DNA of 64,000 bases from Laetmonice hystrix. Its lineage: Eukaryota. Below the pieces are notes generated by a model that made no database searches, was not told the origin of the DNA, and saw only the letters and a list, made by a program, of their open reading frames with translations. This document shows positions 3,001 through 32,431 of this stretch, piece by piece. Numbering within the stretch: position 1 is the first letter of the stretch; every line of letters begins with the position of its first letter. The position numbers and the translations under genes were made by a program. The DNA is taken from NCBI GenBank assembly GCA_965235115.1, contig OZ249437.1, positions 32,612,001 through 32,676,000 of the forward strand, written 5' to 3'.

Positions 3001-6000
3001 GGACATGTAATCAATGTGAGGTTAGTTCTATTGATAAATCGTTCCGTCGCGATAAATGGAATGAGACGTGCCTCAAATCATACTGTAATTATTGAGCCGT
3101 ATTTGCTGCAGAGAAAACATTGCTTGAATAGGCATGCAGCTGGAGATTGGCTTAACTGCCTAATAAATTTAAGGTTTTAACTTTCAAAATATTGTTGTGT
3201 AAGAAAAGAAGTAGCAGCCTGCAACTTTGTGTTTTCTGAAAGTAATTTCCATCAGTAGGAAGACGTTTTTTTCTAGCTTATTAGAAACGAAGGGTATTGG
3301 AGGACTGCGTTCCTTTATATTTCCAGATGGTGTTTTTCCTCTCCCTGGCTCATCTTTAAACGTTGACGTTGATTTTCAGATATTGATGTGGAATGTTAAA
3401 GACCCAGTTTCACAATAAATAGCCGTCGGACGATGGCCATGTCAGTAATGCGGTGGCAGATTTAAAATGGCGGACCGCTGATGAATTTTGAAATGGTATC
3501 TCGAACATCACTGCTGCATTTGTAGATTTGAATAAGGACACCCGGGATTTGAAGTGGAAGATTTGTTGGCCCAAGTATTCCCGTCATATCAGCATTTGAT
3601 TGACAAGATCAGAGGTCGTGTTTAAGTCGTTGTCGACCTGGAATGCTGCATTCACATGCTAATAACGGACATCTGAAGGAGGTATTAACTGGTCGTCTTG
3701 GCAACCAACCACCATCGTGTGTTGTGCTCCTCCTATGTTGTGTATCCGTTGTAACGCGGTAGTCTTTCGGCCACTCGGCTTTTAGAGAGAGGTGTTGAAG
3801 ACTCTGAGAAATGAAAGAGGCATGGAACTGCAACTAACCGTCCTACCCCCCCCCCCCCCCCCCATCAACTCCCCCCCCCCCCCAACCAGGGCACGGGAAT
3901 CGGGACCCAGGACCCCACACTGAATGCACACTGATTACGTAACATCAGTACAATCCTCCATCATTTACTGGTGCATTAAGTTATTATAAATGAGCGCACC
4001 GCCTCGAGTTCACGCTTGATTTATGTCTACTTACATCAGAACAAGAAAAAGTTCAGGCGGGTCACTTCCCGCTTTTTGTCTCCCCCTCAGGCATGACCCA
4101 CAACGCTTTCATCCTGGCTCGGCTTGACCCAGTTTTTAACTAGGGAAAGCGGCTTTTCGTTTTGACCCCTCATCAGGCCCTGATTAGCTACAGGGAAGAA
4201 CCGTAGCTTGTTGAATGAGTGCCATTTAAGATGATCATGAAAAACTACAAATTCATTATGCTTTATGGAAGAAGACGCACACGTTTGACATCACCAAAGG
4301 CCATCGTCCTCCCTTCTATGAAAAACGATTTCCAATAAACATCTCAGTTGTGGAATATAGAGGATGGCGTTCTTTATTATTAGAGTCTGTGTCGGCGTTA
4401 AGAAACGGACCAGGCACAGAAGTGGAAAGTGCTGTTGTTGTTTTTACTTGAACTTAATAAATTGGGTAAAGAATGATGGGTCCCACTGTTGTCAAGTAAG
4501 GAGCTTGGGCAATTCGAACTCAGCAATAATTTAGCCTAGCTAGAACCGCTCTGCTTGATAGTTGGTAGCGAAGGGTCCGTAAAAATGTTGAGTTGTATTC
4601 TTGAATAAGATGTTCCAGGTATCAGTATACGTCTTACAGTACGTGTTAGAGACGGATGTAATCTGTACATCATAACTTTCTTACCAGAAAGAAAAAGTTC
4701 TTTTGATCAGTACGGCAAAGTGTAAAGTTCTAGCTGTGTACACGTATAGATCTGGAGGTTTTTCAGATCTCCAGCCAGGAGGTTGACAGGTATGAAGAAG
4801 TGGTATTTCGGTTATGGCATGCATAAGTAGTGTGTATATTTGACGATTGAACACGTCACAGTGGTGTTTGTATCGTGGCCTCGATGATGGGTGTGTTTCA
4901 TAAACCGTTAGTCGTCACTGTCGGACGTTGACGACATTGGCAGGACTGTAGTCGCCCGATCTGTAGTAAATTAGATTTCATACAAATTGTTGCCCACAGA
5001 AGTGTTGTTAGTTAGTAAACCTACGATTTTGTCACACGATACCTGTTACGTCCTAGGTTCTGTCGTGAAAAGTATAGTTGTTCATGTAGGCTAATCAAAG
5101 GAGCGGTACACTTCCGGTTCTGGTTGTTGCTGAATTTGATGCAGCTTCACACTCGGCTAAAGTTCCTACAGTTACGCGACGTTTTTTTACATCCCATTTT
5201 TTAATGAAACCGCAGGAAACACATCGGTAGGCTAGTAGTTCCGATCGTGTTTACAATTTCATTAAAAAAGACTGTTTCTATGGGAACTATCCCAGAAATG
5301 GATGTTTTACTCAATTTCCAAGGGTAAGGCACTCAAATTCATAAATTTTCTTCCAGAACAACAGTATTTTTGGCTTTGTCATTTCAGTTTTTAGAGGCTT
5401 TTCTGAGATCCACTGCAGCCCTATTAAAATAAACCCACTCTTTGAAAAGTCATGTGTCCTTAACAGTTAATCCTTTGTACATAAAGTTGTTGTTGATTCC
5501 AAAAAATGACGGGTCGAGTGCTTTCTTTTCAAGATATACCACATGCATCCAATGGGAACCTTGGAATTGGTCATTCTGCACGATTTTTGACCAGATGGAC
5601 TGTTCGACAAGATAAAGGGCACAGCCTGTTGTCCTTGGTCTGAGCCTTTAAAACATATACTGTCTGAAAACGGACAAGAACATCTTCTGAGGGCCCATTA
5701 TAACGGAATAAAGAAAAGAAACTCACAAAGACAGCGTATACAATTCTGATAAAAACGAGGGTCGTCAAGTGCATGGTTCATAGAAAGGGAAATCACGAGG
5801 TCGACGTCTTTTTAGTTCAAATCTGGTGTATGTATACTTATTGTCACTATCTGAGCATCAAAGAGAACGTCATCACAGGAGCAGTGCTAATCAGGGGCCA
5901 TGTGGGTATTGTATAGTGTGTGGTGTAGCAGGTAGCTATTGTAAGGCTTGGTTGATTCTTTTTTTGTTTCCACTCTAGACAAGGAAGGAATTAAAAGGTG

Positions 6001-7469
6001 TTGACTGTAAGTCTTGAATCGCTTATTTCAGGCTTCGTATAACCACATCGTTTTTCGGTGGTTTGTATTTTTAGAGCAACGCGAAAACAAAAAGCCAAGT
6101 GATGATGGAAGAAGTCTACCGACAGTGAGTTCGGGTATGAAAACCCACAGCTACGCCATGTGGGGGGGGGGGGGGGGGCATAATTTAGTTATAGCTTGAA
6201 AGCATGAAGGACATGTGAAATGTTAATATTTTCTGTTCCTTCTAAAGAGCTGGGGTTGGTAGTCTAAAAGCCTGGCCACATAGGATGCGTGAACAGGGCT
6301 GGCCACACTGGATGCGTCTCCGATCCGATCAGGCGTACGGCACGTCAAGAGTCGGATGCGCCAATCTCCGCAAAGTCCAAGTTCGTTCAGCACACGTCCG
6401 CCGCATGCGATTTTTGTGGTGTTGCCGTTGCTGAACTACTTAATAGGAGAATCACCGGGAATGCAGGAGGAAATCCCTATGTTTGGGATGTGTTTCCCTG
6501 CCAGCAATGCTGACCAATGTATGTTTTTCTTCCAATTCCTGCCTCTGCTTATTTGGGCCTATCTGATGAACCCACATTCTTCGTTGCTTTCGCTTTCTCA
6601 AGTGTAGAAGAGGCAGGAGTTCAATATCATCGTCGGAACAACTCGAATTTTTAGTCGATATTTCGCCCCCTCCCCAGAATTATAACTCTAGGCCTATTCC
6701 CCGCCTAAAATATAACACCTATTCTCATTGGAAGAGAGAGAAAAATTGGGTCGAGCCGTAGGGTGAGATTGCATCCTGTCTAGCCAGGCATGAGTCTTTG
6801 ACGTATGGGGAAAAATGGTGTCGTGACGGAGACGTGGCGAACACGTATCCTGTGTGGCCGGGCCTTTATAAAATAGCACAGTGTACACACGGTTACACGC
6901 ATCTTTATGTAAGTGTGTGTGTCGCAAAGATGTTCATTTACATCGGGAGTGCCAGTATTCCTTACTACTTCTGAAATAGTAATTGGAAATGAGGCCTGTT
7001 CATAAGAGATTAATTATATTTTTATTAGAACAGGAAGGAGCCAGTCTATAAAAGTTTGAAAGCATCCGTATCAAAATGTAATGTGCACAGATCGCATGCC
7101 AAAGCAATATTAAACGTGGTGCAAGCTTTATTATATTGAGTTCATATTATAAAATTTGGCTTTGCATTGTACACATAGTTATAACTATGTGTATAGTATA
7201 AATACCGCAGTTGATTTCAGTAATATTGTGACTGTACGAGGAAAGAAAATGGTATTGCTAAACGCTCAGTGTTAGTGTCCTAGTTTCACCCTTCATAAAA
7301 ATGTGTAATGTCTGTTATGAAAACTAAATATACATAAATTTGCGCCTTTACCTTGAAGCAACCAACCTCAAGATAAGGTTGATAGAAAGATGCCACTTGT
7401 AAATTTATTGATTTAGTGGCAATCAGTTCGTTTAAATATCTCAATGTTTATGTACATGTTTATGTACAT

Positions 7470-17903: not shown

Positions 17904-18546
17904 TTTCGTGTGTAGTGTTTGCCGGGGGCGGACGTGTTTGAACTGCACTCGCGCTGGTTTTTGAATGCGTTACAGGTGAGTGTTCCTTGGTTGAAGTTTT
18001 ACTCCTTTTGGAGTTAAGCCATTAAGGCATACGGGTTTATTAACCAGACGTGGTCTGGTTTATTGTTTTAAACCCTAAGAATTTGTCGTGACGAGGCTTC
18101 CCGCTGGCGTTGTCTCAGATAGGTCACGGAACGTTGGCGCTGCCTTCGTTCACATGTAAGCCTGTAAGGCATTTTGTCACGGAACGTTGGCGCTGCCTTC
18201 GTTCATTTGTAAGCCTTTACGGCATTTTGATGAGTTTTATAGACGGACGTGGTCCGGGATAAACTATTAACTCAATAAATCTTTTTTGCCGTGACGAGAA
18301 CACCCGCTGGGTGTCTCAGGTTTAGTCACAGTGTCTTGACAAGGAGTTGGTCAATTTCAATACGACCGTGTCGTGTGCCATACCGGTCAAACCGACCCAG
18401 GTGTGAATTGGTTCGGTGGTTCGTCACGGTCGGTTGGGTTTGTCAACACTCTGTATTGATTAATACGAATGGTATTTTTAACTTGGTTTTGAGTTGGCTT
18501 GGTTATAGGCCGAGTATTTATTTCCTTTCTTTTCTTCCGGACAGAT

Positions 18547-19839
18547 ATGCCCGAGAAAGAGGGAAGAAAGGTTGCAGACACTGCTGTAGAAGGGTCTACA
18601 AAGGAGAAAAAGCAGGCGAAGACAAGAAATAAGAAAAATGAAGAATTGGAGCAAGGACCAACTACGTCCGCTTCAGCCTCCCTAAGTACTGCAGAGGAGC
18701 CGCAGACTGTGACCCAGGCACAGCCAATACAAATGGAAGAAACTCAGCCATCTGAGTTTTTTCACGCTCCGTACCCGTTTCAGTACGGGTTACCTTTTGC
18801 GCCGCCGCCTATGCCTATGCCGACGCTTTTCCCGGAGTGGGATACCTGGAGTGGGTATGAGTCGGAAGATACAGCAGGCGGGATGGGGCCTGACCTTCAC
18901 AGTTCCTACTCATCAGATGATAGGCCACGTGCAGAATCCTCTCCAGCTCCAACTCGGGAAGTACCTATACAGCTTGCGAAAGGGAAATTGGCGATGCTAA
19001 TTGAACAGAATAAAGAAAAAGTAGGAGAAGCCTCCAGAAAGGGCGAACCAGTTCACCCCAGCTTAGCGGAAATTGTGGAAAACTGTTTTATTTCACCCGG
19101 AGGGACAGAATTAGAGGATATTGCATCAAAGTATCCTCCACCAGAGAACATTCCTCATTTAACTATACCACAGGTGGAAATGGAAATTTATACTGGGATG
19201 AATCCACAGGCAAGATCCACCGATTCTACTATAAAAAAGCTTCAGGCGGGAGTTGCTGCAGCCTTGTCAGCATTAACACCGATAGCAGCTTTAATGATTG
19301 ACAGGGGACAATCAGACACAGGACTGGATAATCTAGCTGATAATGCACTAGATGCCATTAAGGCGTTAGCCTTGGTAAGCAATGGCCTGAAGTCGAAACG
19401 GAAAGAGAACATTAGATCGGGCATGCAAGGTGTCTATGCTAAAGCGTTGAGCAAATTCTCAGGGGAGTCGCCGGAGTGGCTTTTTGGAGGAAATATCGAG
19501 GAAGCGGCCAAACATTGTGAGGCGGCACAGAAATTGTCTGGTAAGATGATGAAGCAGTCGGCAGGAAAGGTAAGACTTCCTGCTCAGGTAGGGTCCGGGA
19601 GAGGCCGGACACGCGGTATGGTGACATACCCAACCTATCGGGTAGCGCCGTACCAAAGGTCATTTGGGTACCAGCACATGAGGCCAGCCTATCCATATGG
19701 CATGCACTATGCATATCGACAGCCAGGACAACAGTATGACCCCAGGGCGAGGTCAAGGCAGCGGCAGCCACCTACTGCGGCAGTAGGCGCTCCCCCGGCT
19801 CCACGTCCGGATTTTCAGCGGAAGGGGACCCGGAATTAG
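18547..19839 (+). CDS. gag: DIRS ORF1 (gag-like)
   Basis: Long ORF; the first ATG is at 18547 (the track starts at TTG 18499). Core HPSLAEIV...YPPPENIPHLTIPQV...KKLQ...KRKENIR...LFGGNIEE resembles DIRS ORF1, with an Arg/Gly/Tyr/Pro-rich C terminus; it lies upstream of RT. Confidence 0.85.
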   Translation: MPEKEGRKVADTAVEGSTKEKKQAKTRNKKNEELEQGPTTSASASLSTAEEPQTVTQAQPIQMEETQPSEFFHAPYPFQYGLPFAPPPMPMPTLFPEWDTWSGYESEDTAGGMGPDLHSSYSSDDRPRAESSPAPTREVPIQLAKGKLAMLIEQNKEKVGEASRKGEPVHPSLAEIVENCFISPGGTELEDIASKYPPPENIPHLTIPQVEMEIYTGMNPQARSTDSTIKKLQAGVAAALSALTPIAALMIDRGQSDTGLDNLADNALDAIKALALVSNGLKSKRKENIRSGMQGVYAKALSKFSGESPEWLFGGNIEEAAKHCEAAQKLSGKMMKQSAGKVRLPAQVGSGRGRTRGMVTYPTYRVAPYQRSFGYQHMRPAYPYGMHYAYRQPGQQYDPRARSRQRQPPTAAVGAPPAPRPDFQRKGTRN

Positions 19840-19844
19840 AGCAA

Positions 19845-21750
19845 GTGGGTACCTCTGTTGACGCTTTGCCTGATCTTGAGTTTAAGGCAGGAAACATTGC
19901 TAGATGTGTGCGTGAGTGGCTGAAACTGTCGAGGGACCCCTGGATTCTTTCTATGGTACAGGGAGTACGTATTCCCTTTATGGAAGGGGAGCCTGTACAG
20001 GAAAGGGAACCGCACCCATTTAGAATATGTGAAGCAGAACGTCACTGTCTGAGGATAGAACTTAACAAGTTGGTTAAAAAAGGTGTCATCAGACCAGCAC
20101 AGCCACTGGATGGGCAATTTATTTCGAATATTTTTCTACGACCCAAGCCAGTGGGCCATAGACTGATTTTGGATTTGACTAACTTAAATAAGTTTGTCCA
20201 ATATGAACATTTTAAGATGACCTCATTACAGACTGCTTTGGACTTAATTAGACCAGGGGCCTGGCTCGGTTCAGTAGATTTATCAGACGCGTATTACACT
20301 GTGAATATACGTGAAGAACATAGGAAGTTTTTAAGGTTCAGGTTTGAAAATGTTATTTATGAATATGTAGGTATGCCAAATGGTCTAGCCTGTGCCCCGA
20401 GGATTTTTACGAAAATTCTGAGCCCAGCATTTGCACATTTGAGGGAGGCAGGTAACGAGGCTTTCCCCTATATTGATGATTCTTTCGTTATTGCAGATTC
20501 TTTTCAGGAATGTCGGGATTCCATAAACTCATTGTGTAATTTATTTCAAACTTTGGGTTTTTTTTGTGCATCCTGACAAGTCAGTATTGACCCCAACGCA
20601 GAAGTTGACCTTTCTGGGGTTCAGTTTGGACACATCCTCGATGACGGTTAGTCTTACACAAGATAAAAAGGACAAATTTTGCAGAGCATCATTACAAGTC
20701 CTACAAAGCAAACGTGTGGTTATACGCGAGGTAGCTGGACTTATTGGTTTGATGGTAGCGTATTCCTCGGGAGTACAGTACGGAGCTGCACATATAAAAT
20801 TTTTAGAGATTGACAAAAATATGGCCCTCCGAGAGGCGAAGGGGAATTTTGATCATACCATGGTGCTCACAGACAGGGCAAAGGAAGACATTAGGTGGTG
20901 GCTATCTGCACTACCAGCTGCAGTTAAAAGTATAAGACCCCCTAAAATCACCATGGAGGTCAGCACTGATGCCTCGATGCTGGGATGGGGGGCTCACACG
21001 GACTCAGTGGAGACTGGGGGCCGGTGGTCAGCTGACGAAAGTCGGCAACACATTAACGTTTTAGAGTTACTAGCAATATTGTATGGACTGAAGAGTTTGT
21101 GTCATGAAACGAGGGTACACGTGAAGGTGTTAACAGATAATACCACAGCGGTAGCGTATGTAGACAATATGGGCGGTGTAAGGTCGCCTCAGTGCAATTG
21201 GGTAGCCCGGGAGATTTGGAACTGGGCAGAGCAGGCACACAATTGGATTACGATTGCGTTCATACCTGGTATTAATAATCAGATCGCAGATTTACATTCC
21301 CGAAAATTTATGGACGAAACGGAATGGGAAATCGGTAAACAGATATTTGATAGAATATGTAAGGCCTTTGGAAAGCCAGATGTAGACTTGTTTGCGTCAA
21401 GGTTGAATAAAAAACTAGATAAATTTGTATCATGGAGACCAGATCCCGAAGCATGGAAAACAGATGCGTTCACGTTAGACTGGTCAGAAGGTTTTATGTA
21501 TATTTTTCCGCCTTTCAGTCTAGTAGGCCGGGTCGCCAGCAAGATGTTGGCGGACGGAACACGAGGAATCCTGATCACTCCGTGGTGGCCGACGCAGCCG
21601 TGGTTTGCAACAGTCCAGAAGGCGGCGTCACGACGACTGTACTTCAGAAGCAGGCCACACAATCTAATACCAAACGGGGAGCCACGAAACAAAGAAAAGT
21701 TACACAGCTGCCCCTTGGTGGCATACCTTTTTTGGGAAAAAAGTTGTTAA
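19845..21750 (+). CDS. pol: DIRS ORF2: reverse transcriptase - RNase H - DNA adenine methyltransferase-like domain; split by one frameshift at the T8 run 20558-20565
   Basis: RT motifs HRLILDL, SVDLSDAYY, GMPNGLACAPRIFTK and YIDD; RNase H motifs STDASMLGWG, HINVLELLAI, TDNTTA and NQIADLHSR; MT motifs VDLFASRLN and YIFPPF. Removing one T restores LGFFVHPDKS and joins the 19845-20576 and 20566-21750 ORFs. The frame is open from 19740. Confidence 0.93.
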
Positions 21751-22703
21751 AAGCTGGTTTTGATAAGAAAACAGTTGAACTCATTATGGCATCATGGAGA
21801 AACTCCACCAAGAAACTTTACACAACTTATTTAAAGAAATGGGCTACCTACTGTTGCCAATATAAAGTCACTTTGTTGGAGCCAACCTTACCCCAAGTGT
21901 GTGCTTTTCTTAGAGGTTTAGCAGACAGGGGCCTGGGTTATGGGGCCCTGAATGCTGCCAGATCGGCTTTAGCGGTTGTATTACCGGATATGGACGGCTA
22001 TGGTATTGGGAAACACCCGTTGGTGTGTAGGCTAATTAAAGGGGTTTATGAAAGGAACCCGCCAAAACCTCGTTATTCTTCTTTTTGGGATGTCAAAAAG
22101 GTTTTTAAGTTGTTCAAGCAATGGGGTCGCAATGAGGATTTATCCTTAAAATATCTATCCTTAAAACTTGCAGTTTTGCTGTTACTGGTGACCTCACAGA
22201 GGGGCCAAACCGTTGTAAATTTAAATATAGATGGACTCGTTAAATCAAAGCATAAGGTAGTGTTTAAGATGAAATGTTTACTGAAACATAACAGATTAGG
22301 GGATAGGTTGGACTCAATTATCCTCCAATCGTTTGACAAGTGTCCCACAGTCTGTGTGGTTAGAACACTGAGACAGTATTTGGAAAAAACGAGAGGATTC
22401 AGGAAAGGGGAGAGTCAATTGTTATTAAGTTATCGAGCGCCACATAGGGCTATATCGAGAGACAGTTTAGCGAGGTGGACGCTAGCTGTGCTTAGCATGG
22501 CGGGAATTGATATTTCGGTGTATAAATCCCACTCTACTAGAGGGGCGTCAGCGTCTGCGGCCCATAGATTGGGAGCTTCGATAGGACAGATTTTGAAACA
22601 GGCTAGATGGCGAAATGTACGGTCATTCGCCCTGTTTTATAATAAGGATATTGATGAAGACCAAGAGGTTGCGAAGAGATTGTTAAATGAAGCACTGACA
22701 TAA
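21432..22703 (+). CDS. DIRS ORF3: tyrosine recombinase
   Basis: N-terminal integrase SAM-like segment (ASWRNSTKKLYTTYLKKW), TSQRGQ (catalytic R), LKHNR, HSTRGAS (HxxR), ARW and FALFY (catalytic Y). It overlaps the 3' end of ORF2 in another frame, as is typical for DIRS. Confidence 0.95.
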   Translation: METRSRSMENRCVHVRLVRRFYVYFSAFQSSRPGRQQDVGGRNTRNPDHSVVADAAVVCNSPEGGVTTTVLQKQATQSNTKRGATKQRKVTQLPLGGIPFLGKKLLKAGFDKKTVELIMASWRNSTKKLYTTYLKKWATYCCQYKVTLLEPTLPQVCAFLRGLADRGLGYGALNAARSALAVVLPDMDGYGIGKHPLVCRLIKGVYERNPPKPRYSSFWDVKKVFKLFKQWGRNEDLSLKYLSLKLAVLLLLVTSQRGQTVVNLNIDGLVKSKHKVVFKMKCLLKHNRLGDRLDSIILQSFDKCPTVCVVRTLRQYLEKTRGFRKGESQLLLSYRAPHRAISRDSLARWTLAVLSMAGIDISVYKSHSTRGASASAAHRLGASIGQILKQARWRNVRSFALFYNKDIDEDQEVAKRLLNEALT

Positions 22704-23037: not shown

Positions 23038-23170
23038 CTGCCGTCTCCCCGCGCACGCGCTCTCCTTCTCAGATATTCCCTACAACACTACGTGTTGTCC
23101 TCGGTAAAATTATAATTCTACTTCAACTTGTACCAAGGTAAGTCTCGTATAATTTTAATATTAATATTTT
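23038..23170 (+). repeat. DIRS right inverted terminal repeat plus right-end extension
   Basis: CTGCCGTCTCCCCGCGCACGCGCTCTCCTTCTC...GTGTTGTCCTCGGTAAAA (inverted relative to the left end), followed by an extension complementary to the ICR and ending AATTTTAATATTAATATTTT. Confidence 0.92.
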
Positions 23171-25268
23171 ATCCAGGTGATGAGAGTAACGGTAAAGACA
23201 TGTCTTTACCGTTACTCAGTAACAGTAAAGACATCTCTTTACCGTTACTGGTTACAGTACATGTTAAGTTTCTTACTGTTTCAATGCAAAGCCTTGGCAT
23301 CAATCAACTTGACACAGTATTATATTACCTCTAACAGGTCAGAATAACCTCATAGTTGTTTCATTTGACCTCCCTTCTAGGCCTACTAAAGTTTGTTAAC
23401 TTTTCATGGTAACGGTAAAGACACACCCGTCTTTCCTGTTACTATGGTAACGGTAAAGACATCCGTGTAAAACTTAATTTTCAATCTTTATGAAAAATTT
23501 GCAGTTTCCAGTGTTGCAGCTCCGTAGAATCTTATATATCATTGAAAGGAGAGGGATTCACCTGTCTTTGGCCAAAAACAAAATAAGTTTTATTTTTTAA
23601 TTGTCTTTACCGTTACTGGCACGTTTCTGTGAAAATGGCCCATATGCGCATTCTATCTGCCAGTGACAATCAGGGGGTACCATACGGTGGTCCGTATGGA
23701 ACGCTCGTTCCATACGGACTGATTTGATTGAACACGTTAGGGGGTGATGTGACGTTAACTCTGTGATGGACCGTTCGGTGTCGTGCCGTATTCATGCGCC
23801 AGTCATCTCGTTCCATGCTTTACCACAGTGAAGGTCCCCTCAACCCGTCACGTGTTTTTACATAACCAGGGACACGCATTTATTAGTACACCATGTACTT
23901 GAGTAACTAGTATCCGATAAACGTTTTTAAAACTGATAAGGTTCCTAATTAATTTAAGATTTTGTGACAGCCGACCTCTGCAAACAGAAATGTTACAATG
24001 GTCGACGTAGGCTAAATGCCCACCTGAGCGTTAGGTCAGAAAAAGTGATAGTGAGCTCACATTTTACGTCTTTCCTTGCAAACTGGTCATTTTCTCATGA
24101 AATATCTTAGTATGAAAGGAGTGAGAACCAATTACAAATACGACATCTTGTGTAACTTTTTTATATTTTCACAAGGTCTAGAACCAGTTTCTTTTTAATC
24201 CGGAAAGTGCATTTCTTGAATACCCTGCGCCTAGGGGAATCCTGGAGTCATGCGAATATTGCTCATCCGTTCGCTGAAGGCTAGGTAGACTGATACCAAA
24301 ATAAACATGGATCATAAGACGCCTAAACGGCTACCATTATTTCTCTAACCTCCCCTGACTGAAATTTTAAAGTAGGTCTCGACATACAAGCGCATGACAT
24401 TAGAATTTTGAGCTGATTCACTTTTCGGTATTCACATTTGACTTTTCACATTTGCCATAAGATAATTTTAACATTTGGATTGTACGGTTGTTCTTATTTA
24501 CACATGACCTTGATTTTCACATATGACATTCATTTTTGTCACATATAGCGGATGTTTCACATATGGCGGAATTTTCATATTGAAGGATGCTACAGGCGAA
24601 CACTCAGACAGGTGGAGGTGGGAGTCTGTGACGACTTGGCAAAACTCAATTTGTAAGCCTTGTCTGTGAGACGTACAGCATTTTACGAATTCAGCGCTAG
24701 GATTCTAAGTTTGTCTGGCCGCTTTGACTAATCATTCGTTTAGTAAGGTAACAAGGAGTTCAAGGAACTCCGTGATCTGTCTAGGAAAGAATACTAAGTA
24801 TGGAGGTATAAGGATAGGAAAGCCAGCGTCAGGTAGACGAAATGAAATCTCGAATATTTCCATTTGTTTGCCAGCGCTGCAATAGACAACTTCGACGCGC
24901 CGCACCTGCCCCTCTTGGAACATTGCTTCATCTGCATAAACTAATTGGCATTCAGACAGACTCGGCTAATGAGTAGTGTGACCCTCTGACCCATCCTTGA
25001 CTTTTGTTACTAAAATACGATCATTGCATAGTGTGCCGTGAGACTAGATGAAATCAGTAGCGTTGTTCCCTCAGGCATACTTTAAAACACGGCACAGGAA
25101 AACAGAAAGAGGATTTTTTTTTTTTTTTTATACATTTTTTTATTTTTTTCTACATTGATATACAATATGTACAATATACAATGCACATACACAAGTACAC
25201 ATACATGACATGCAGAGACAACAGAGTTATAAAACAAAAGGTATTATACGGCAGCTGGTGTACAAAAA

Positions 25269-28200
25269 TTAAATATTAATATTAATATGTTCTAGTGCAG
25301 TCCAAAGGGTTCCCCATTTGTCTATAAACCTATGTATTTTGTTCATGTTAATCGTTATTTCCATTTCAACTTCTAATTCGTACCTCAGTTTCTTTAAAAA
25401 AGCTGGAAGTGTCGGCGCCTGTTCCCTTAACTTTGATTGGTAAATATAATATTTTCCTAATAGCACTACTCCATTCCACGCTGTCACATGTGGACTGTAG
25501 AGCAGGTTTCCGAAAATGACATGCATTTCCGAAATTTCCATTCTGTCATCTATAATATTATTGAACCAGTGTTTCACCTGTTCCCAAAAAGCGTTAACTC
25601 TCTCACATCTATATAGCATATGGGCAATTGTCTCTTTCTCCCCGTCACAAAAGGTGCACAAGTCACTGTCCTTCAGACCCATTTTAAATAGAACTGGATT
25701 TAATACTACCGCATTGTGGAGTACTTTGTATTGAAATTCTGTTATCTTTTTGTTTTTCCATAAAGTGCCGTATAAGGTATAAATCTTCTTCCAAGTTTCG
25801 TCCTTTATATGATACTCTACATTGTATTTCTTCTTTCCCGCTGATTCCCGACATAACTTCTTTTGTATTAACATTCTGTATATTATTTTTGTTGACGTAG
25901 TCTCCAAAACATACGATACTTTCTTATCCCCAATTTTCCCGCTTAACACCAAACCATTTAATGCACTGTCTACAGGTGTTTCGGGGCTTGCAGGTGTTGC
26001 CTTCTGTTTTAAAACTGCGCTTACTAAGCCTCTCCATAACATATAGTATTTTTTTTCAACACCTCTATTACGCCACACTTCAAAGGGGATAGTCTTACCA
26101 TCTTTAAACAAATCTTCAGGGTACCAGATGCCACCTTGAAACATGCTTCTATTAAAAACTGGGTTTTTGTTTATTGGTATGGCGTTGTTATTCCATATAA
26201 ATTTTCTGTTAAACTGGGACACTTTAAACCAGTTTCTCATTATTTCTTGGTGAAAGGGTGGTAGATGTTTTAGACTTCTCATGTCAAGGTTGCTATGTAC
26301 TAAGATTTGTATACCCCCATGCGCAGTGAAAAAATGATTGAATGCTACTTTCCAATGATGCTCCATACCGAAGAAATACCGTTGCAAACATCTGATTCTG
26401 GTGGTTTCAATGCGGGTTTCTAGATCTAACATCTTTTGACCTCCTTCTTCATATTCACCAAACAGAACCTCTCTTCTAATTTTTCCCCTTTTTTTCCCTT
26501 TCCATATAAAATTCCAGATAATATCATTTACTGACTCAATTATATGTTTCGGCACAGTCAGAACAGACATTATATATTCGAATTTAGACAGTCCTAGACT
26601 TTTGCTTACTAGTATTCTGCCATTTAATGTTAAATCTCTCATTTTCCACATATTCAGGGTACTTTTCAAAGAAAGCACCTTTGATTCATAATTCGCCTTC
26701 GCCATATACTGTCTATCGTGACTAACATGAACTCCTAAAATTTTGATGGATGCACTCCACTTCACTCCCAAGGGCTTGTCTATGTTGTTTTGTGCACTTC
26801 CAAGCCACATTGCTTCCGTCTTGTCCATATTGATTTTTAAGCCAGAACACTTTTGAAACTCTTTCACTAGTTGTAAGAATACCTTGGCTGATAATATATC
26901 TCCAAAAAGACCACTAGTATCATCCGCATATAGCGCTAACTTCATTTCGGTATCCCCTAGAATTATTCCTCTAATTTCCTTTTCTTCCCTGACCACATGT
27001 GCTAGCACTTCTATAGCTAAAATGAATAGGTATGGGGACAGAGGGTCCCCTTGTCGTACGCCCCTTTGTAGCTTAAAGTACCCTGAGGTGTAACCATTAT
27101 TGATAGTGCATGCTGAAATCTCAGTGTAAAAGGTCTTGACCCATTTTATGACACCTAGGCCAAAATTGAAATTTTCCATCGTTTTTAACATAAAATTCCA
27201 ATTTAATGAATCAAAAGCCTTTTCGAAATCGATACCGAGCAATACTCCAGGAATTTCTTCTGTGTCCATATATTCCATTACATCTAAAATTTGGCGTATA
27301 TTGTCTCCAATATATCGTCCGTCTACATAGCCCGTTTGATTATGGTGTATAATTTCGGGTAAAACCTTTTTTATTCTGTATGCTATGACTTTTGTCATTA
27401 TCTTATAGTCTGTATTTAAAAGGGAGATGGGGCGCCAGTTTTTCAGCATAAGCCTATCCTTTCCTTTGTCAATCAGGGTAATAACTGCTTGTCTTTGTGA
27501 TACCGTCAAAAGTTGCTTCTCATAACCGTTGTTATAACATGGTATTAATATTTGTTTAATGTCATCCCAAAAGTATTTATAAAATTCTATTGTAAGACCA
27601 TCATTGCCTGGTGATTTGTTATTTTTAAAAGTTCTCATGACGGTTTTGCATTCTTCTTCTGTTATCTTTCCTTCACAGCTGTCTTTTTGTTTTTCCGAGA
27701 GCTTTGGCAAGAATTTGGGGTTGAAGAATTTGTCATTTGTAATTTCTACATGACTGTTGTCATTCTCGCTGTACAGTTTCTCGTAAAAGCGTTTTTCTTC
27801 TGATAAAATCTGTTTTGGATCTGTTGTTAATTCACCTGTTGCCATCTTCAATTTTCTTATATGTTTTTTAATGAAATTTCTTTTTTCTAAGCTCATGAAA
27901 TACTTCGTGCTTTTTTCTCCATGCTCATGCCATCTTGCTTTAGCTCTCAGAATTGTACCTCTTGCTTTTAACATACTGATATTTTCTATCTCCTTCTTTG
28001 CTTCTTCATATTCTAATAGATTGCCCTCAGCTAAGTTTTCTTCAAGTTCTCTCACTTTTGCCAATAATTCATCCTCTCTATCCTTTTGTCTCTGCGTGCG
28101 TTTTTTTGAGTACAATATCGTTTCTTGTCGTATCTTATATTTAATAAATTCCCATGCCTGAGTAATGTCTTCTACCTCTTTCAAATCCTGTCTCCATAAG

Positions 28201-29024
28201 CAGAGCTTTTGTTTCATCATGTTTGTATACGCTGGATCGGATATTAAACTGGAATTGAATTTCCAGTATCCTTTTCCTCTGGGTTGTTCCTCCGTCTGGT
28301 CTAAAGTTAAAGTTATCGCTGAGTGATCGGTGTATTTTGCCGGCGTTATATCTACCGAATTAACATTATCATATACATTTCTTGACAGTAGAAAGAAATC
28401 TAACCTGCACTGTATCAAAGGCGATTTTTGTCTCCAGGTGTACCTTCTTGTATCTGGATTCTTTAATCTCCAGACATCGTCAACTTCATATTGTTCTTTA
28501 ATATCATTTATTTCTTTTATAACCCGTTCTTTGAGATTTATGTTACCACCGCTTTTGTCTATTTGTTGTTGTATAATATTAAAGTCCCCTCCCATTATTA
28601 TCTTTGACTCCGGTCCAACATCCATTTTTTCCAACAGGTTTCTTATGCTTTGAAAAAATTGGATTTGCTGTGGTTCCTGGTTAGGAGCATAAATATTCAG
28701 GATAGTAAATTCTTCATCGTTTATCTTCACTTTTAAAAGTACATATCTTCCATTAACATCTATATCCTCGCTCTGTATCATAAGATCTAAACCTTTTCTG
28801 ATCAAAATCATAGTGCCTCTACTGTGATTGGTTCCATGACTAGTTTTCATGACACCCTCCCACTCATTTCTCCATATGTGTTCTAATTCCTGAGTACTAA
28901 AAGTTTCCTGAAGCAATGCAATGTCCGCTTTTTCCTTTTCGAGCCAAGTAAAAACTGCACTTCGAACTTTCTTGTCATTCAAACCTTTAACGTTAACTGA
29001 TAGGAACTTAATATTTTTATCCAT
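25269..29024 (-). CDS. LINE ORF2: APE endonuclease - reverse transcriptase - C-terminal CCHC (L1/Tx1 clade)
   Basis: APE motifs SVNVKGL, LLQETF, NIYAPN, GGDFN, RLDFFL and TDHSA; RT motifs KSPGNDG, WRPISLLNTDYK, IDFEKAFD, GVRQGDPLSP and YADD; C-terminal CTFC...ETIAHMLYRC. The ORF is uninterrupted. The first ATG is at 29024 (MDKNIKF); the track starts at GTG 29042. Confidence 0.98.
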   Translation of the reverse strand: MDKNIKFLSVNVKGLNDKKVRSAVFTWLEKEKADIALLQETFSTQELEHIWRNEWEGVMKTSHGTNHSRGTMILIRKGLDLMIQSEDIDVNGRYVLLKVKINDEEFTILNIYAPNQEPQQIQFFQSIRNLLEKMDVGPESKIIMGGDFNIIQQQIDKSGGNINLKERVIKEINDIKEQYEVDDVWRLKNPDTRRYTWRQKSPLIQCRLDFFLLSRNVYDNVNSVDITPAKYTDHSAITLTLDQTEEQPRGKGYWKFNSSLISDPAYTNMMKQKLCLWRQDLKEVEDITQAWEFIKYKIRQETILYSKKRTQRQKDREDELLAKVRELEENLAEGNLLEYEEAKKEIENISMLKARGTILRAKARWHEHGEKSTKYFMSLEKRNFIKKHIRKLKMATGELTTDPKQILSEEKRFYEKLYSENDNSHVEITNDKFFNPKFLPKLSEKQKDSCEGKITEEECKTVMRTFKNNKSPGNDGLTIEFYKYFWDDIKQILIPCYNNGYEKQLLTVSQRQAVITLIDKGKDRLMLKNWRPISLLNTDYKIMTKVIAYRIKKVLPEIIHHNQTGYVDGRYIGDNIRQILDVMEYMDTEEIPGVLLGIDFEKAFDSLNWNFMLKTMENFNFGLGVIKWVKTFYTEISACTINNGYTSGYFKLQRGVRQGDPLSPYLFILAIEVLAHVVREEKEIRGIILGDTEMKLALYADDTSGLFGDILSAKVFLQLVKEFQKCSGLKINMDKTEAMWLGSAQNNIDKPLGVKWSASIKILGVHVSHDRQYMAKANYESKVLSLKSTLNMWKMRDLTLNGRILVSKSLGLSKFEYIMSVLTVPKHIIESVNDIIWNFIWKGKKRGKIRREVLFGEYEEGGQKMLDLETRIETTRIRCLQRYFFGMEHHWKVAFNHFFTAHGGIQILVHSNLDMRSLKHLPPFHQEIMRNWFKVSQFNRKFIWNNNAIPINKNPVFNRSMFQGGIWYPEDLFKDGKTIPFEVWRNRGVEKKYYMLWRGLVSAVLKQKATPASPETPVDSALNGLVLSGKIGDKKVSYVLETTSTKIIYRMLIQKKLCRESAGKKKYNVEYHIKDETWKKIYTLYGTLWKNKKITEFQYKVLHNAVVLNPVLFKMGLKDSDLCTFCDGEKETIAHMLYRCERVNAFWEQVKHWFNNIIDDRMEISEMHVIFGNLLYSPHVTAWNGVVLLGKYYIYQSKLREQAPTLPAFLKKLRYELEVEMEITINMNKIHRFIDKWGTLWTALEHININI

Positions 29025-29369
29025 TTCCCTTTTCGTATACACTCATTATCAAATTCTTCTCTCCTACTACCGTATTAATAGAGACTGGTGTTTCATGCCA
29101 TTTACATAACAGAGTACAAAACATAAACACACGATTTACACAAACTATCACAAAGCACGTCTGCTGGGCGACCAACAAATACACCTCCGATAGACACATA
29201 AAACACATAGTGGAGGGCTTGCTTTAGCAATTGACAAGGAAGGTATGCCCTCACCGGCCACGTAGGCCTAACATGGAGAAACCCCTAGTATTGTTATAAT
29301 ACACCTTTTCTGAACTGGCGTCATAAAAGAAGCAAAAGAAAAAGGGGCCGGGAAAAGGATAATCAATGG

Positions 29370-30230
29370 TAATGCCAGGAGCCGGGTGGTCAGGCAAGTG
29401 TGACCGATGACAGCGGCCTGAGACCGGCCAGGTCAGTGAAACATAAACAACCCGAGATCGGCAGTCAGGTAAAGCTCCATCTACTGGAACTCTTAAGGAT
29501 ATACACTCGGGTACCTCAGTTAGTATAAAACAATCTAGCATAATATATCAAGCCCATTTCTTCGAAAATATCTGGAATGAGCATATTTTTTTCCTACATT
29601 TGAGATTTAGATATCGAAAGTTCGAGACGGGCGGATGTCTGCGTAACAGTCATGAACTGCACTCGTATAAAGTGAGAGGGTTGTTTTATCAAGAGCTTCA
29701 GTTGAGGTAATGTCAGAAGCCGCGTGGTCAGGAAGGTGTGACCCACATTTCTCACACTAGTAGACTGCTGCATAACAGCGACCTGAGACCGGTCAGGTCA
29801 ATGAAACATAAACAACCCGAGATCGCCAGTCAGGTAAAGCTCCATCTACTGGAACTCTTAAGGGTATACACTCAGGTAACTCAGTTAGTATAAAACAATC
29901 TAGCACAATTAATGTAACAAGCACATTTCCTCAAAAATATCTGGAATGAGCATGCACCACTCCTACATTTGAGATTTAGATATCGAAAGTTCAAGACGGG
30001 CGGATGTCTGCGTAGCAGTCATGAACTGCACTCGTATAAAAGTTAGAGGGTTGTTTTATCAAGAGCTTCAGTTGAGGTAATGTCAGAAGCCGGGTGGTCA
30101 GGAAGGTGTGACCCACATTTCTCACACTAGTAGACTGCTGCATAACAGCGACCTGAGACCGGTCAGGTCAATGAAACATTGACCCCAGAACTTGTCTATA
30201 AACAAACCGAGATCGGCAGTCAGGTAAAGC
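29370..30230. repeat. Tandem repeat (about 360-370 bp unit, about 2.4 copies) in the inter-ORF spacer of the LINE
   Basis: GCCG(G/C)GTGGTCAGG...CCTGAGACCGG(C/T)CAGGTCA...GAGATCGGCAGTCAGGTAAAGC recurs at about 29381, 29719 and 30089, with a shared CTACATTTGAGATTTAGATATCGAAAG block. Confidence 0.92.
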
Positions 30231-30360
30231 GAGTGTGGCGGTTTCACGAAGTTGTATAGTAGGCCTATATTATATTAAACTTTCGTGTGCCAGGAACAGA
30301 AGAGTATCACCTAACTGATAACCAAATTATTCTTTCTTTCTTTATAGGTCTGAAGATAGT

Positions 30361-31701
30361 TTAGGAGAGGTCATCCCGGATTCGCATCAGGAGTTTCCCC
30401 AGGAGGTTGTTCCCCCAGTTTTCCCGGCCCTCCATGATTTTGCTGTCCCTAAGGCTACGACCGATACCCCAGAACTTGTCATTGGGCGATGCCTCCAGAA
30501 GGATATTCGAGCGAGTTGCGAGAAGGAACTCTCGGATAGCTTGATTCTGCTCGAATTTCGCACGAAGGCCTGGGTAGACAAGATCCTCGGCAGATTTTAT
30601 CCACTCCGTACGATTAAAGTTTTTGATCTTGTAGCCAACCGCTTTGATAGCACCTGGTGATGTGAGCTCCATGACATGATCAGCAGAGATCTGATCATTG
30701 AATTTTAGAGCTTTTTGGCGTTGTAGCCATTGTTCCCCGTTAGCGTAGCGGATTCCCTCCATGACAAATTCAGAGTTGTGAAAGTTACTGAGTGGGGAGG
30801 CCGAGGAGAAGAAGAAGGTGTGGTTGTCGATTATTTTCGATGCTAGATTCTGAGGTTTGAGAGAATCCGGGAGGGTGTGAAGGTTTTTCACGGTGTATGT
30901 CTGGGAGTTGATAACCAGTTTGGCTGCCACCAGTTTGGTGCGTAGGCCTTGATCAATAGCAGCACGTCGAACGGGTAAGAGTTGACGGATGTTGCTTTCA
31001 ACTTCGAGGGGGAAGTGTTCCTTTATAATAACAGGGGAGTTGTTTTGTTTCAGCATGGTTCGACGAGCCCAGATACTGTCCCGATCAAGGCGGCTTACAA
31101 AGGAGACAATGGTAGGCCGGGGTTTCCCGGCGGGACCAGAGAGACGATGAAAGTTATTGAAATATATCTTGCAGAAGTCAACACCAAGCGAGCCGAAGAT
31201 ATCCGTCAGTTTCAGCCTCAAATGGTCTTGAGTTTCGGCTTTCTGATCAGGAATGTTGAGAAGTATTAGATTGTTCTTCTTGCTGTACGCTTCGGCGGTC
31301 AGAAGCTTGTCGTGCAGCTTTGTGTTTTCCTCTCGGAGTGAGTGCACTTGGTTTTGGAGGGCAGCAATGGTTTGTTTGGATTCTTCGGACACGGCCAAGG
31401 CATGGTTTACGCCGTCTTCCAATGCAGTGTAAGAACCTGCGAGATCTTTGAGGTCTCCTGCCATGCCGATTAGGAGCCCCCACATTTTAACCGCCCACGG
31501 AGGGGTGTTCGAGTCGAGGTCAGTGATTTTGGCTATTTTATAGTCAATGTCCGTGGACACCTCGTCCTCGGCAGTTTTATACGCAATGTCCTTGGACGCC
31601 ATTGTGACTGGGCGAAAAGGGGGCAGTTTCTTGTATGCAGGCGAGGTCTCAGGACTGCTACCAGAAACGAAACGTTTTTTACCTTTTGACGGGGTAAACA
31701 T
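30361..31701 (-). CDS. LINE ORF1p (coiled coil - RRM - CTD, L1/Transposase_22-like) fused to a C-terminal NADAR (YbiA-like) domain
   Basis: aa ~83-139 form a heptad-rich coiled coil. aa ~140-272 carry L1-type ORF1 RRM/CTD motifs (YSKKNNLILLNIP, FHRL...KPRPTIVSF, IKEHFP, KLVINSQTY). aa ~294-446 carry NADAR motifs FF...PLSNFH, GEQWLQRQKA, GLRAKFEQN, LEASPNDKFWGIG and GNNLLGKLLMRIR. Confidence 0.92.
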   Translation of the reverse strand: MFTPSKGKKRFVSGSSPETSPAYKKLPPFRPVTMASKDIAYKTAEDEVSTDIDYKIAKITDLDSNTPPWAVKMWGLLIGMAGDLKDLAGSYTALEDGVNHALAVSEESKQTIAALQNQVHSLREENTKLHDKLLTAEAYSKKNNLILLNIPDQKAETQDHLRLKLTDIFGSLGVDFCKIYFNNFHRLSGPAGKPRPTIVSFVSRLDRDSIWARRTMLKQNNSPVIIKEHFPLEVESNIRQLLPVRRAAIDQGLRTKLVAAKLVINSQTYTVKNLHTLPDSLKPQNLASKIIDNHTFFFSSASPLSNFHNSEFVMEGIRYANGEQWLQRQKALKFNDQISADHVMELTSPGAIKAVGYKIKNFNRTEWIKSAEDLVYPGLRAKFEQNQAIREFLLATRSNILLEASPNDKFWGIGRSLRDSKIMEGRENWGNNLLGKLLMRIRDDLS

Positions 31702-32431
31702 GGAGAAAAGGCGGTTGTAGAGGTCTATGGTGCCTGTGGAGTTTGTAGAACGACCAGTATCAGGAATTTTCTTCGAGGTTTTGGGTTAAATCCAGTTTTT
31801 GGCGAGGACGAGGAAAAGGCTGAACTAGTCTGCGGTCGCCATCTTGAATATCTCCTGTTGGATGGATGTTGTTTGATAGATAAGACAGACCCACAGTCTG
31901 GGTCATGGAATGAGTGTATTGAAAGGCTTGGATTTTATGTCGCCTCCGTGCTGTAGAAACATGAATAATTTGTTCAAAGGATTGACGTCCCCTTTTAGTA
32001 TACAGAAGGATCGACGCTCTCGAAAATGGATGAGTAAAAATATCAAAATATTCCTATTAATAAAAAAATCGCACGCATGGTGGACATTTGCATTTCGTAA
32101 AGCAGAAGTTCTTAATGGGAAGGGTTGCTTGTTCCTGCTAGGTTGCTGCATTTCTCATTTTATTAATTACACTTTTTGTTCTCCGTGAATTCTTGGATAA
32201 CCATTTGAACGGTCTAAAGGCTGTCAGACTGGAAGATTTCTAGAAAAACATTAGCAGATAATGAAGGTTTGACGTTTTGTCTGATGACTAGTTGCTGGGT
32301 TGGCATAGGTCTGGAGAATAATGAAAACTGAAAGCAAATGGAAATGGAAGACTTCTTGTAGTCTCTCTCTCTGTTACTTAAATGGATTGCAAATGGGGGA
32401 ACATGCCTCTGCAAATGTAATGGATCTTTAA

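Follow-up and report, generated by a model that had tools for sequence, protein, structure and literature searches.

We have analysed a window of 64,000 nucleotides from Laetmonice hystrix (assembly GCA_965235115.1, contig OZ249437.1, positions 32,612,001 to 32,676,000; all positions below count from the first letter of this stretch) and found on its minus strand a complete long interspersed nuclear element (LINE). The first open reading frame (ORF1) of this LINE encodes a protein, ORF1p, in which a core of L1 type continues in frame into a NADAR domain that has its catalytic set complete, and of this architecture we are practically certain. The ORF1 proteins of LINEs are generally seen as RNA chaperones that have no enzymatic activity, with the CR1/L2 elements and their esterase as the main exception. 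The NADAR domain would thus be a second enzyme built into ORF1p, in this case throughout a LINE clade that is large, old and still active, and it comes from a family that has been shown since 2023 to erase ADP-ribose from the bases of DNA and RNA. What the domain does for the element is less clear cut, and we favour, tentatively, the erasure of ADP-ribose from bases of the nucleic acids of the element itself.

Architecture of the ORF1-NADAR protein

The fusion protein is encoded by an uninterrupted open reading frame of 446 codons plus stop (30361 to 31701, minus strand). An earlier note on this stretch, made from the letters alone, had read there an L1-type ORF1 (coiled coil, RNA recognition motif or RRM, C-terminal domain or CTD) continuing in frame into a NADAR domain, and the AlphaFold2 model, the Foldseek comparisons, the profile of the core and Pfam all bear this out. 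The five NADAR/YbiA motifs that it had listed are all in the translation: LSNF (residues 304-307), EQWLQRQKA (323-331), KFEQN (382-386), EASPNDKFWGIG (403-414) and GNNLLGKLLM (431-440). The Pfam NADAR model (PF08719, DUF1768) matched residues 300-445 with an E-value of 2e-39 (135.9 bits, for a cut-off of 35.1), spanning model positions 9-162 of 163, and was also matched by 19 out of 19 aligned ORF1 relatives. Compared with the solved NADARs by phmmer, ORF1p matched those of Phytophthora nicotianae (8BAU, E = 5e-12) and Escherichia coli (YbiA, 2B3W, E = 3e-10). There was also a weak match of the NADAR to the Pfam model Phage_30_3 (E = 2e-4, below cut-off). The domain, of the type with a glutamate in the last strand, was mapped to residues 299-446 (30364..30807), nearly the same interval (ca. 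30364-30822) that had been proposed before.

The NCBIfam model TIGR02464 (riboflavin-intermediate N-glycosidase, an equivalog domain) also recognized the protein well above its cut-off (E = 2e-40, 138.4 bits against 73.7). However, the context of that model is fusion or linkage to ribA/ribD, and what we find here is a domain fused to a LINE ORF1p, so that in spite of the passing score we have not transferred the functional label.

No confident Pfam match was found for the first 300 residues. Two profiles had been suggested as a check, NADAR and Transposase_22, and only the former was recovered: in single-sequence searches Transposase_22 was matched neither by the ORF1p of the window nor by any of its 19 relatives, among which the lone match to a trimer family was a weak one (Tnp_22_trimer, E = 0.005). 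The L1-type label rests therefore on structure and profile evidence. The AlphaFold2 model, built on the alignment of 19 relatives, had a mean pLDDT of 86 (above 93 across the NADAR domain, below 50 for residues 1-50) and displays a disordered N-terminus, a helix (68-141), an RRM (144-228), a CTD made of a helix and strands (232-297) and the NADAR domain (300-446), that is, the order coiled coil, single RRM and CTD of the L1-type (type II) ORF1p. When this model was compared with the PDB by Foldseek, the NADARs came first (8BAU, E = 2.5e-11, TM by target 0.79, root-mean-square deviation 2.0; YbiA 2B3W, E = 1e-8, TM 0.73, a comparison that the earlier note had proposed), and the next matches were to human LINE-1 ORF1p, with twelve chains. 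For its trimer (2YKP/2YKO) the E-value was ca. 1e-7 and the TM by target 0.65-0.67 over 184-214 columns, and human L1 ORF1p was also recovered by sequence with the RRM-CTD core profile (E = 1.2e-12).

Along the DNA (minus strand), these parts are a low-complexity disordered N-terminal region (residues 1-59, 31525..31701) with 21% identity between families, the coiled coil or predicted trimerisation helix (68-141, 31279..31500), the RRM (142-230, 31012..31278), with a beta-alpha-beta-beta-alpha-beta fold in the model that matches the RRM of human L1 ORF1p (2W7A, 2YKP), and the CTD (231-298, 30808..31011), in which a helix (232-250) is followed by strands and which matches the L1 ORF1p trimer and 2LDY. 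RRM and CTD together have an isoelectric point of 10.1 and a net charge of +10, a basic pair expected to bind nucleic acids. That ORF1p is a trimer had been assumed from the start, and here the support comes from a three-copy model, which gave a parallel trimer with heptad-spaced contacts over residues 69-143, an ipSAE of 0.72 against 0.01 for the best control, a contact agreement between runs of at least 93% and a partner pLDDT of 82. The pass mark used for such models was reached by 21 out of 30 proteins solved as pairs and by none of 23 solved as single chains.

The full-length LINE and its copies

ORF1 belongs to an element of 6,736 bp (25114..31849, minus strand) whose limits are given by collinear copies. 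It starts with a 5' untranslated region (UTR) of 148 bp (31702..31849), from the common 5' end of the copies to the ATG of ORF1. ORF1 is followed by an inter-ORF spacer of 1.3 kb (29025..30360), present in all copies and containing 2.1 copies of a 370-bp tandem repeat (29410-30179, minus strand, Tandem Repeats Finder), by ORF2 (1,251 residues from the ATG, 25269..29024) and by a 3' UTR with a poly(A) tail (25114..25268), an A-rich end common to the copies beyond which the flanks are unrelated. ORF2 contains an APE domain (ca. 28323-29003; Exo_endo_phos, E = 4e-17), a reverse transcriptase or RT (ca. 26724-27461; RVT_1, E = 2e-37) and a C-terminal zinc knuckle (ca. 25584-25769; zf-RVT, E = 2e-7), all on the minus strand. 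Because ORF2 matches human L1 ORF2p (8UW3, residues 3-875, E = 6e-106), we assign the element to the L1 superfamily (L1/Tx1), all of whose traits it has: the N-terminal APE, the RT, the Cys-His knuckle, the poly(A) and the target-site duplications.

Collinear copies, 97.7-99.9% identical to the LINE, lie on C18 (two), C13, C12, C11, C5 and C2, i.e., on six chromosomes; all these comparisons are of natural copies against each other. The 5' end common to all of them is ATTCAAGATGGCGACC..., the 3' end is the poly(A), and several are flanked by direct repeats of ca. 13-16 bp that resemble target-site duplications. Since the copies sit in unrelated flanks, the family is not site-specific. An intact ORF1 of 446 residues is present in six copies including that of the window, the other five being 98-99% identical, and the ORF1 of the C5 copy is open from residue 5. 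ORF2 is stop-free in seven copies, again including that of the window, with a reported protein identity of 100%. A family this young with both frames intact among its copies looks still able to move. The element is a complete member of the L1 superfamily of LINEs that has been active recently.

The two C18 copies (G000:C18:19810300-19829580) are 9,277 bp apart and have identical 5' and 3' flanks, which shows them to be a tandem segmental duplication carrying the LINE rather than two separate insertions. Both have an extra insertion of ca. 1.9 kb in the inter-ORF spacer (their positions ca. 4933-6878), the first 488 bp of which correspond to 23155-23641 of the window at 98.8%; as this sequence lies just outside the element of the window, the insertion is a separate repeat.

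Distribution across the clade and origin of the NADAR

The fusion is by no means confined to this family. When all six frames of the genome were searched with the NADAR model, 741 candidates were obtained, and all of the 150 that were scored (150/150) were above the Pfam cut-off, nearly all of them stop-free and most within open frames of 420-480 residues. Searching the genome with ORF1p revealed dozens of families with 27-37% identity over residues ca. 108-445, i.e., over both the core and the NADAR. The divergent families of this genome have an ORF1-NADAR of their own and, 0.5-1.9 kb downstream of it, an L1-like ORF2 with 61-69% identity to that of the window. The same layout was found outside the genome in an element (L038) with an ORF1-NADAR 45% identical to ours, followed by an APE-RT ORF2 of 1,266 residues, on contigs of two NCBI assemblies and of one TARA ocean metagenome. 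ORF1-NADAR beside APE-RT ORF2, for which the earlier note had proposed a survey, is found both among the families of this genome and in the external element.

The profile of the ORF1 core, stripped of the NADAR columns, was then compared with 1.84 billion cluster representatives; 30,931 proteins matched with E<=1e-3, and for 721 the match reached E<=1e-30. Among the 160 nearest public relatives of the core, 145 have a NADAR, which is nearly complete in 126, and the remainder are short and probably truncated. In the ESM Atlas, the look-alike clusters of 415-489 residues have NADAR in 100% of cases and are eukaryotic, chiefly Annelida, and the neighbours with an ORF1-like fold are chiefly Mollusca. 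The ORF1-NADAR architecture is a trait of a large and old LINE clade and not a one-off capture. One practical consequence is that these LINEs account for hundreds of invertebrate proteins annotated merely as "NADAR domain-containing."

It might be argued that the fusion is an artefact, be it a chance open frame, a mis-assembly or a host NADAR exon beside an unrelated LINE fragment, and the base composition would seem to invite such a view, the GC content of the element in the window being 0.49 in ORF1 and 0.36 in ORF2. However, the complete 6.7-kb unit is repeated on six chromosomes, the fusion is present in more than 100 public protein clusters, and the GC contrast is found in every ORF1-NADAR family examined (0.42-0.49 in ORF1, 0.33-0.36 in its own ORF2), including L038, an element of another organism. 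The artefact, to which we gave a vanishingly small probability, is already refuted. The related idea that the GC jump marks two unrelated elements lying side by side is ruled out by the collinear copies and by the identical contrast in every family.

As for the source of the domain, the nearest stand-alone NADARs that we found are 32-37% identical to the LINE NADAR, and in the NADAR tree twelve stand-alone NADARs group in one clade (SH-aLRT 99) apart from all the LINE NADARs save one, that of P0014, the most divergent ORF1-NADAR, which falls inside it. A recent capture from bacteria is ruled out by this level of identity and by the separate clade (with the exception of P0014). The tree fits a single old acquisition and would leave room for a second one.

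Some observations made along these searches should be mentioned. Two of the NADAR matches lie inside very long frames, of 1,660 residues (G000:C1:23020367-23020792, plus strand) and 1,649 residues (G000:C8:28856722-28857147, minus strand), which may be different fusion architectures, e.g., a NADAR joined to ORF2 or to another protein; other matches are in frames of 532-573 residues. The relationships by ORF1 and by ORF2 are discordant: L038 is 45% identical in ORF1 and 34% in ORF2, and the families of this genome are 27-37% identical in ORF1 and 61-69% in ORF2. Such identities suggest that LINE lineages have swapped ORF1 modules, or else that the rates differ greatly. A Mollusca-dominated cluster of the ESM Atlas, with proteins of 425 residues, matched the model weakly over residues 55-381 (TM 0.49 by query, 0.51 by hit) and carries PF01205 Impact_N in 78% of its members, and if the ORF1 core is truly common to both, this could be another accessory module at the position of the NADAR. 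Finally, some gene models of the AlphaFold DB, such as "Enolase 4" (871 residues) and "Neuroligin-4" (1,029 residues), contain the ORF1-NADAR fold in their interior, and in these a LINE ORF1 has probably been joined to a predicted host gene.

Conservation of the catalytic residues and selection

Across nine families that are 25-47% identical overall, the identity of the NADAR (35.9%) is the same as that of the RRM (35.3%) and the CTD (35.6%) and well above that of the coiled coil (17.5%). By alignment to 8BAU and YbiA, the catalytic residues (with their codons on the minus strand) are E323 (30733-30735), K330 (30712-30714), E403 (30493-30495), D408 (30478-30480) and W411 (30469-30471), equivalent to E48, K55, E125, D130 and W133 of YbiA. 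The acidic residues of the motifs, E323, E403 and D408, had been noted as retained, and all three align with catalytic residues of YbiA. Mutagenesis has shown E88, K95 and D171 to be needed in the E. coli C7 NADAR (PMC11543638), and E48, D130 and W133 in YbiA (PMC9303266); E323, K330, D408 and W411 of ORF1p are the equivalents, by alignment, of these C7 NADAR and YbiA residues. The glutamate in the last strand marks the YbiA and general NADARs, the position being Asp in DarG1 (BC4488) and His in the phage NADARs (PMC11125620). Counted over 112 full-length family members, E323 and S305 are kept in all (112/112 each), E403 in 108, K330 in 107, W411 in 101 and D408 in 93, with Asn in its place in 12.

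The variation within the family tells a similar story. When eight copies are compared, 9 of the variants in the NADAR are synonymous and 8 are not, which gives a rate ratio of 0.25 and an excess of synonymous change (binomial p = 0.006); the ratio in the RRM-CTD is similar (0.27), so that the neutral evolution of the domain among copies, which would have spoken against its importance, is not what is found. These counts are small, yet they agree with the deep conservation. To judge from the sequences, the NADAR is a constrained and integral part of ORF1p across the clade, and probably it is catalytically active and under selection. The pairwise identities of core and NADAR were only weakly correlated (Spearman 0.29), a value that neither supports nor rejects their co-divergence because most pairs are near saturation.

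What could the NADAR do for the LINE

Any explanation has to start from the protein to which the domain is attached. An ORF1p acts in cis, coating the LINE RNA from which it was itself translated. The explanation we favour, although we would put its chances at slightly below even, is that ORF1p-NADAR erases ADP-ribose from bases. The NADAR would be an active N-glycosidic hydrolase, and its fusion to an RNA-coating protein would concentrate many active sites on the ribonucleoprotein (RNP) of the element itself. There it would remove ADP-ribose from guanine or cytosine of the LINE RNA, of the nascent cDNA or of the single-stranded target DNA. Left in place, such adducts would stand in the way of translation, reverse transcription or second-strand synthesis. 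The affinity for nucleic acids that bare YbiA-type NADARs lack would come from the RRM-CTD.

The biochemistry of the family makes this plausible. ADP-ribosylated guanine (G-ADPr, at N2) on DNA and RNA is hydrolysed by all four NADAR subfamilies, with E. coli YbiA and a sponge NADAR among their members, and ADP-ribosylated cytosine (C-ADPr) is also removed by the NADAR and YbiA subfamilies; apart from NADARs, no family of hydrolases is known to reverse G-ADPr on RNA, and a NADAR bearing a nucleic-acid-binding extension is more active than E. coli YbiA (PMC11543638, PMC11125620, PMC12945103, PMC11833690). By analogy with these enzymes, a base-ADP-ribosylated nucleic acid is a quite possible substrate, if still somewhat short of probable. 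Where the adducts would come from is a separate matter. Guanine-specific DNA ADP-ribosyltransferases of the CARP-1 type are known mainly in bivalves and also in other invertebrates (PMC12945103). That the adducts are made by a host transferase acting as an anti-LINE defence seems to us rather doubtful, and at least as doubtful is the complete scenario in which invertebrate hosts ADP-ribosylate LINE RNA, cDNA or target DNA (e.g., with enzymes of the CARP-1/pierisin type) and the L1/Tx1 clade counters with a NADAR in ORF1p.

Several points weigh against the erasure of base ADP-ribose by ORF1p. The substrate is not readable from sequence, and the same NADAR also scores as TIGR02464, i.e., as the riboflavin-intermediate N-glycosidase type. 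About 17% of the family members (19/112) have replaced D408, mostly by Asn. The trimer model may echo a memory of the solved L1 ORF1p trimer. The models PF03496, PF01375 and PF01129, for ADP-ribosyltransferases of the R-S-E type, had no match in the genome, a result that is uninformative as the control genomes were silent too, and searches for sequencing runs of the source sample found DNA runs only and no RNA runs.

Other functions have to be considered. The NADAR might perform a routine RNA-processing step of the LINE life cycle, on some NAD- or ADP-ribose-derived structure of the element RNA or RNP, and its universal retention in the clade would fit an essential built-in step. To our knowledge, though, no such step exists in any LINE, and as far as we know the L1 elements of other lineages manage without a NADAR. 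There are precedents in that SL1 trans-splicing in nematodes depends on the NADAR domains of SNA-3, fusions of giant-virus mRNA capping enzymes with NADAR turned up in the Atlas fold search, and processing of RNA intermediates has been proposed (PMC12477816); tested NADARs are, however, inactive on the phosphate-linked ADP-ribose found at the 5' and 3' ends of RNA and DNA (PMC11833690), and on balance we hold this role to be unlikely. More unlikely still is an action on small molecules (ADP-ribose-derived immune signals, NAD metabolites or riboflavin intermediates) that would shift the state of the cell in favour of the element. The TIGR02464 score above cut-off, the fact that the earliest proven activity of YbiA was on riboflavin intermediates and the viral combinations of NADAR, Macro and SLOG predicted to process diffusible ADP-ribose derivatives (PMC9503650) all speak for it, but there would be little point in tethering the enzyme to a trimer that coats RNA if its substrate diffuses freely, there is no ribA/ribD context, and E. 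coli YbiA itself also cleaves G-ADPr.

The last alternative is that the domain is mainly structural or binds ADP-ribose with little catalysis, e.g., as a tether of the RNP to ADP-ribosylated chromatin or DNA breaks. The replacement of D408 in 19 of the 112 members, of W411 in 11 and of K330 in 5 could be taken in this sense. Nevertheless, the catalytic Glu is invariant (112/112), the full set is intact in the copy of the window and in most families, and the pattern of conservation is the one typical of retained catalysis, which makes a mere binding role improbable.

If the erasure of base ADP-ribose is what the NADAR does, and it acts on the nucleic acids of the element, then base ADP-ribosylation occurs on endogenous animal nucleic acids. 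It would also have to matter for retrotransposition, either as a host defence or as collateral damage from genotoxic transferases of the host. The proposal is directly testable, with a small and soluble-looking ORF1p, defined catalytic residues and published assays.

A second retroelement in the window

Outside the LINE, the window contains a second retroelement (18499-22703, plus strand) with consecutive open frames that match RVT_1 (E = 1e-13), the RNase H-like RVT_3 and, below cut-off, an N6-adenine methyltransferase of the Dam kind (PF05869, E = 2.6e-5), a set of domains typical of DIRS-like elements.

Comparison with known systems

That NADAR is not known as a characterised ORF1 module, as the earlier note had it, is correct only in part. 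A recent paper on transposons of Ectocarpus, in which Repbase was queried with the NADAR domains of Gypsy elements, mentions in two sentences that the ORF1 of several Tx1 LINE families of Crassostrea gigas carries a NADAR of the YbiA family (PMC12477816, Genome Biol 2025), that is, the module had been noted, and it was not characterised there. The oyster elements are, like that of the window, invertebrate LINEs of the L1 superfamily with NADAR in ORF1, a likeness drawn by description; the mention includes no analysis of the ORF1 core, the catalytic residues, selection or distribution, and our element comes from a different assembly. We use the label Tx1 solely as that paper applies it to the oyster elements and not as a placement of the element of the window. 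NADAR is not listed in the large 2016 survey of L1/Tx1 ORF1 domains, a survey of 2022 on the NAD/ADP-ribose systems of viruses has no mention of retrotransposons (PMC9503650), and the biochemical literature treats animal NADARs as stand-alone proteins of unknown role (PMC11125620). For macrodomains in non-LTR (long terminal repeat) elements, which the earlier note had mentioned, our literature search found no supporting paper. The ORF1-NADAR fusion is therefore not new as an architecture, with one prior mention found; what we add is a measure of how widespread it is, the L1 type of its core, the retention of the catalytic residues and the connection with recent work on de-ADP-ribosylation of nucleic acids.

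The human LINE-1 ORF1p (2YKP/2YKO, 2W7A, 2LDY) has the coiled coil, RRM and CTD in common with the ORF1p of the window, but the sequence identity is ca. 17% and the human protein ends after the CTD, with no enzymatic domain. With the NADARs of P. nicotianae (8BAU) and E. coli (YbiA, 2B3W) the domain shares the fold as well as the five catalytic residues (Glu, Lys, Glu, Asp and Trp). These two and the NADAR of Amphimedon queenslandica are proven to remove ADP-ribose from G, and some of them from C, on DNA and RNA. They are 27-29% identical to the NADAR of the window and stand alone. The precedent for a trimeric ORF1p with an accessory hydrolase is that of the CR1/L2-type LINEs (e.g., ZfL2-1; PMC3905857), which differs in that the hydrolase is an SGNH esterase, for which a role with lipids or membranes has been proposed, and the LINE clade is another one.

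Other retroelements and viruses have acquired domains that process ADP-ribose as well. A lineage of Gypsy LTR-retrotransposons of Ectocarpus has a NADAR at the N-terminus of Pol (PMC12477816), and positive-strand RNA viruses have Macro/NADAR domains in the replicase polyprotein (PMC9503650, PMC7232374). In both cases the carrier protein (Pol or replicase) is different from that of our LINE and the acquisition is independent, the Ectocarpus domains being closest to bacterial NADARs. The logic is the same in the NADARs of the DarG1 antitoxins and of phage T4 (gp30.3, which neutralises the DarTG1 defence), where an antitoxin or a mobile element erases the ADP-ribosylation of guanine. The domain of the window is not a DarTG1 antitoxin: its neighbours are the LINE spacer and ORF2, with no adjacent DarT, and its last strand has Glu (E403), in a eukaryotic system, where DarG1 has Asp and the phage NADAR His. 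If the defence reading were true, what we describe would be the counterpart, at the level of a eukaryotic retroelement, of the conflict between DarT1 and the phage NADAR.

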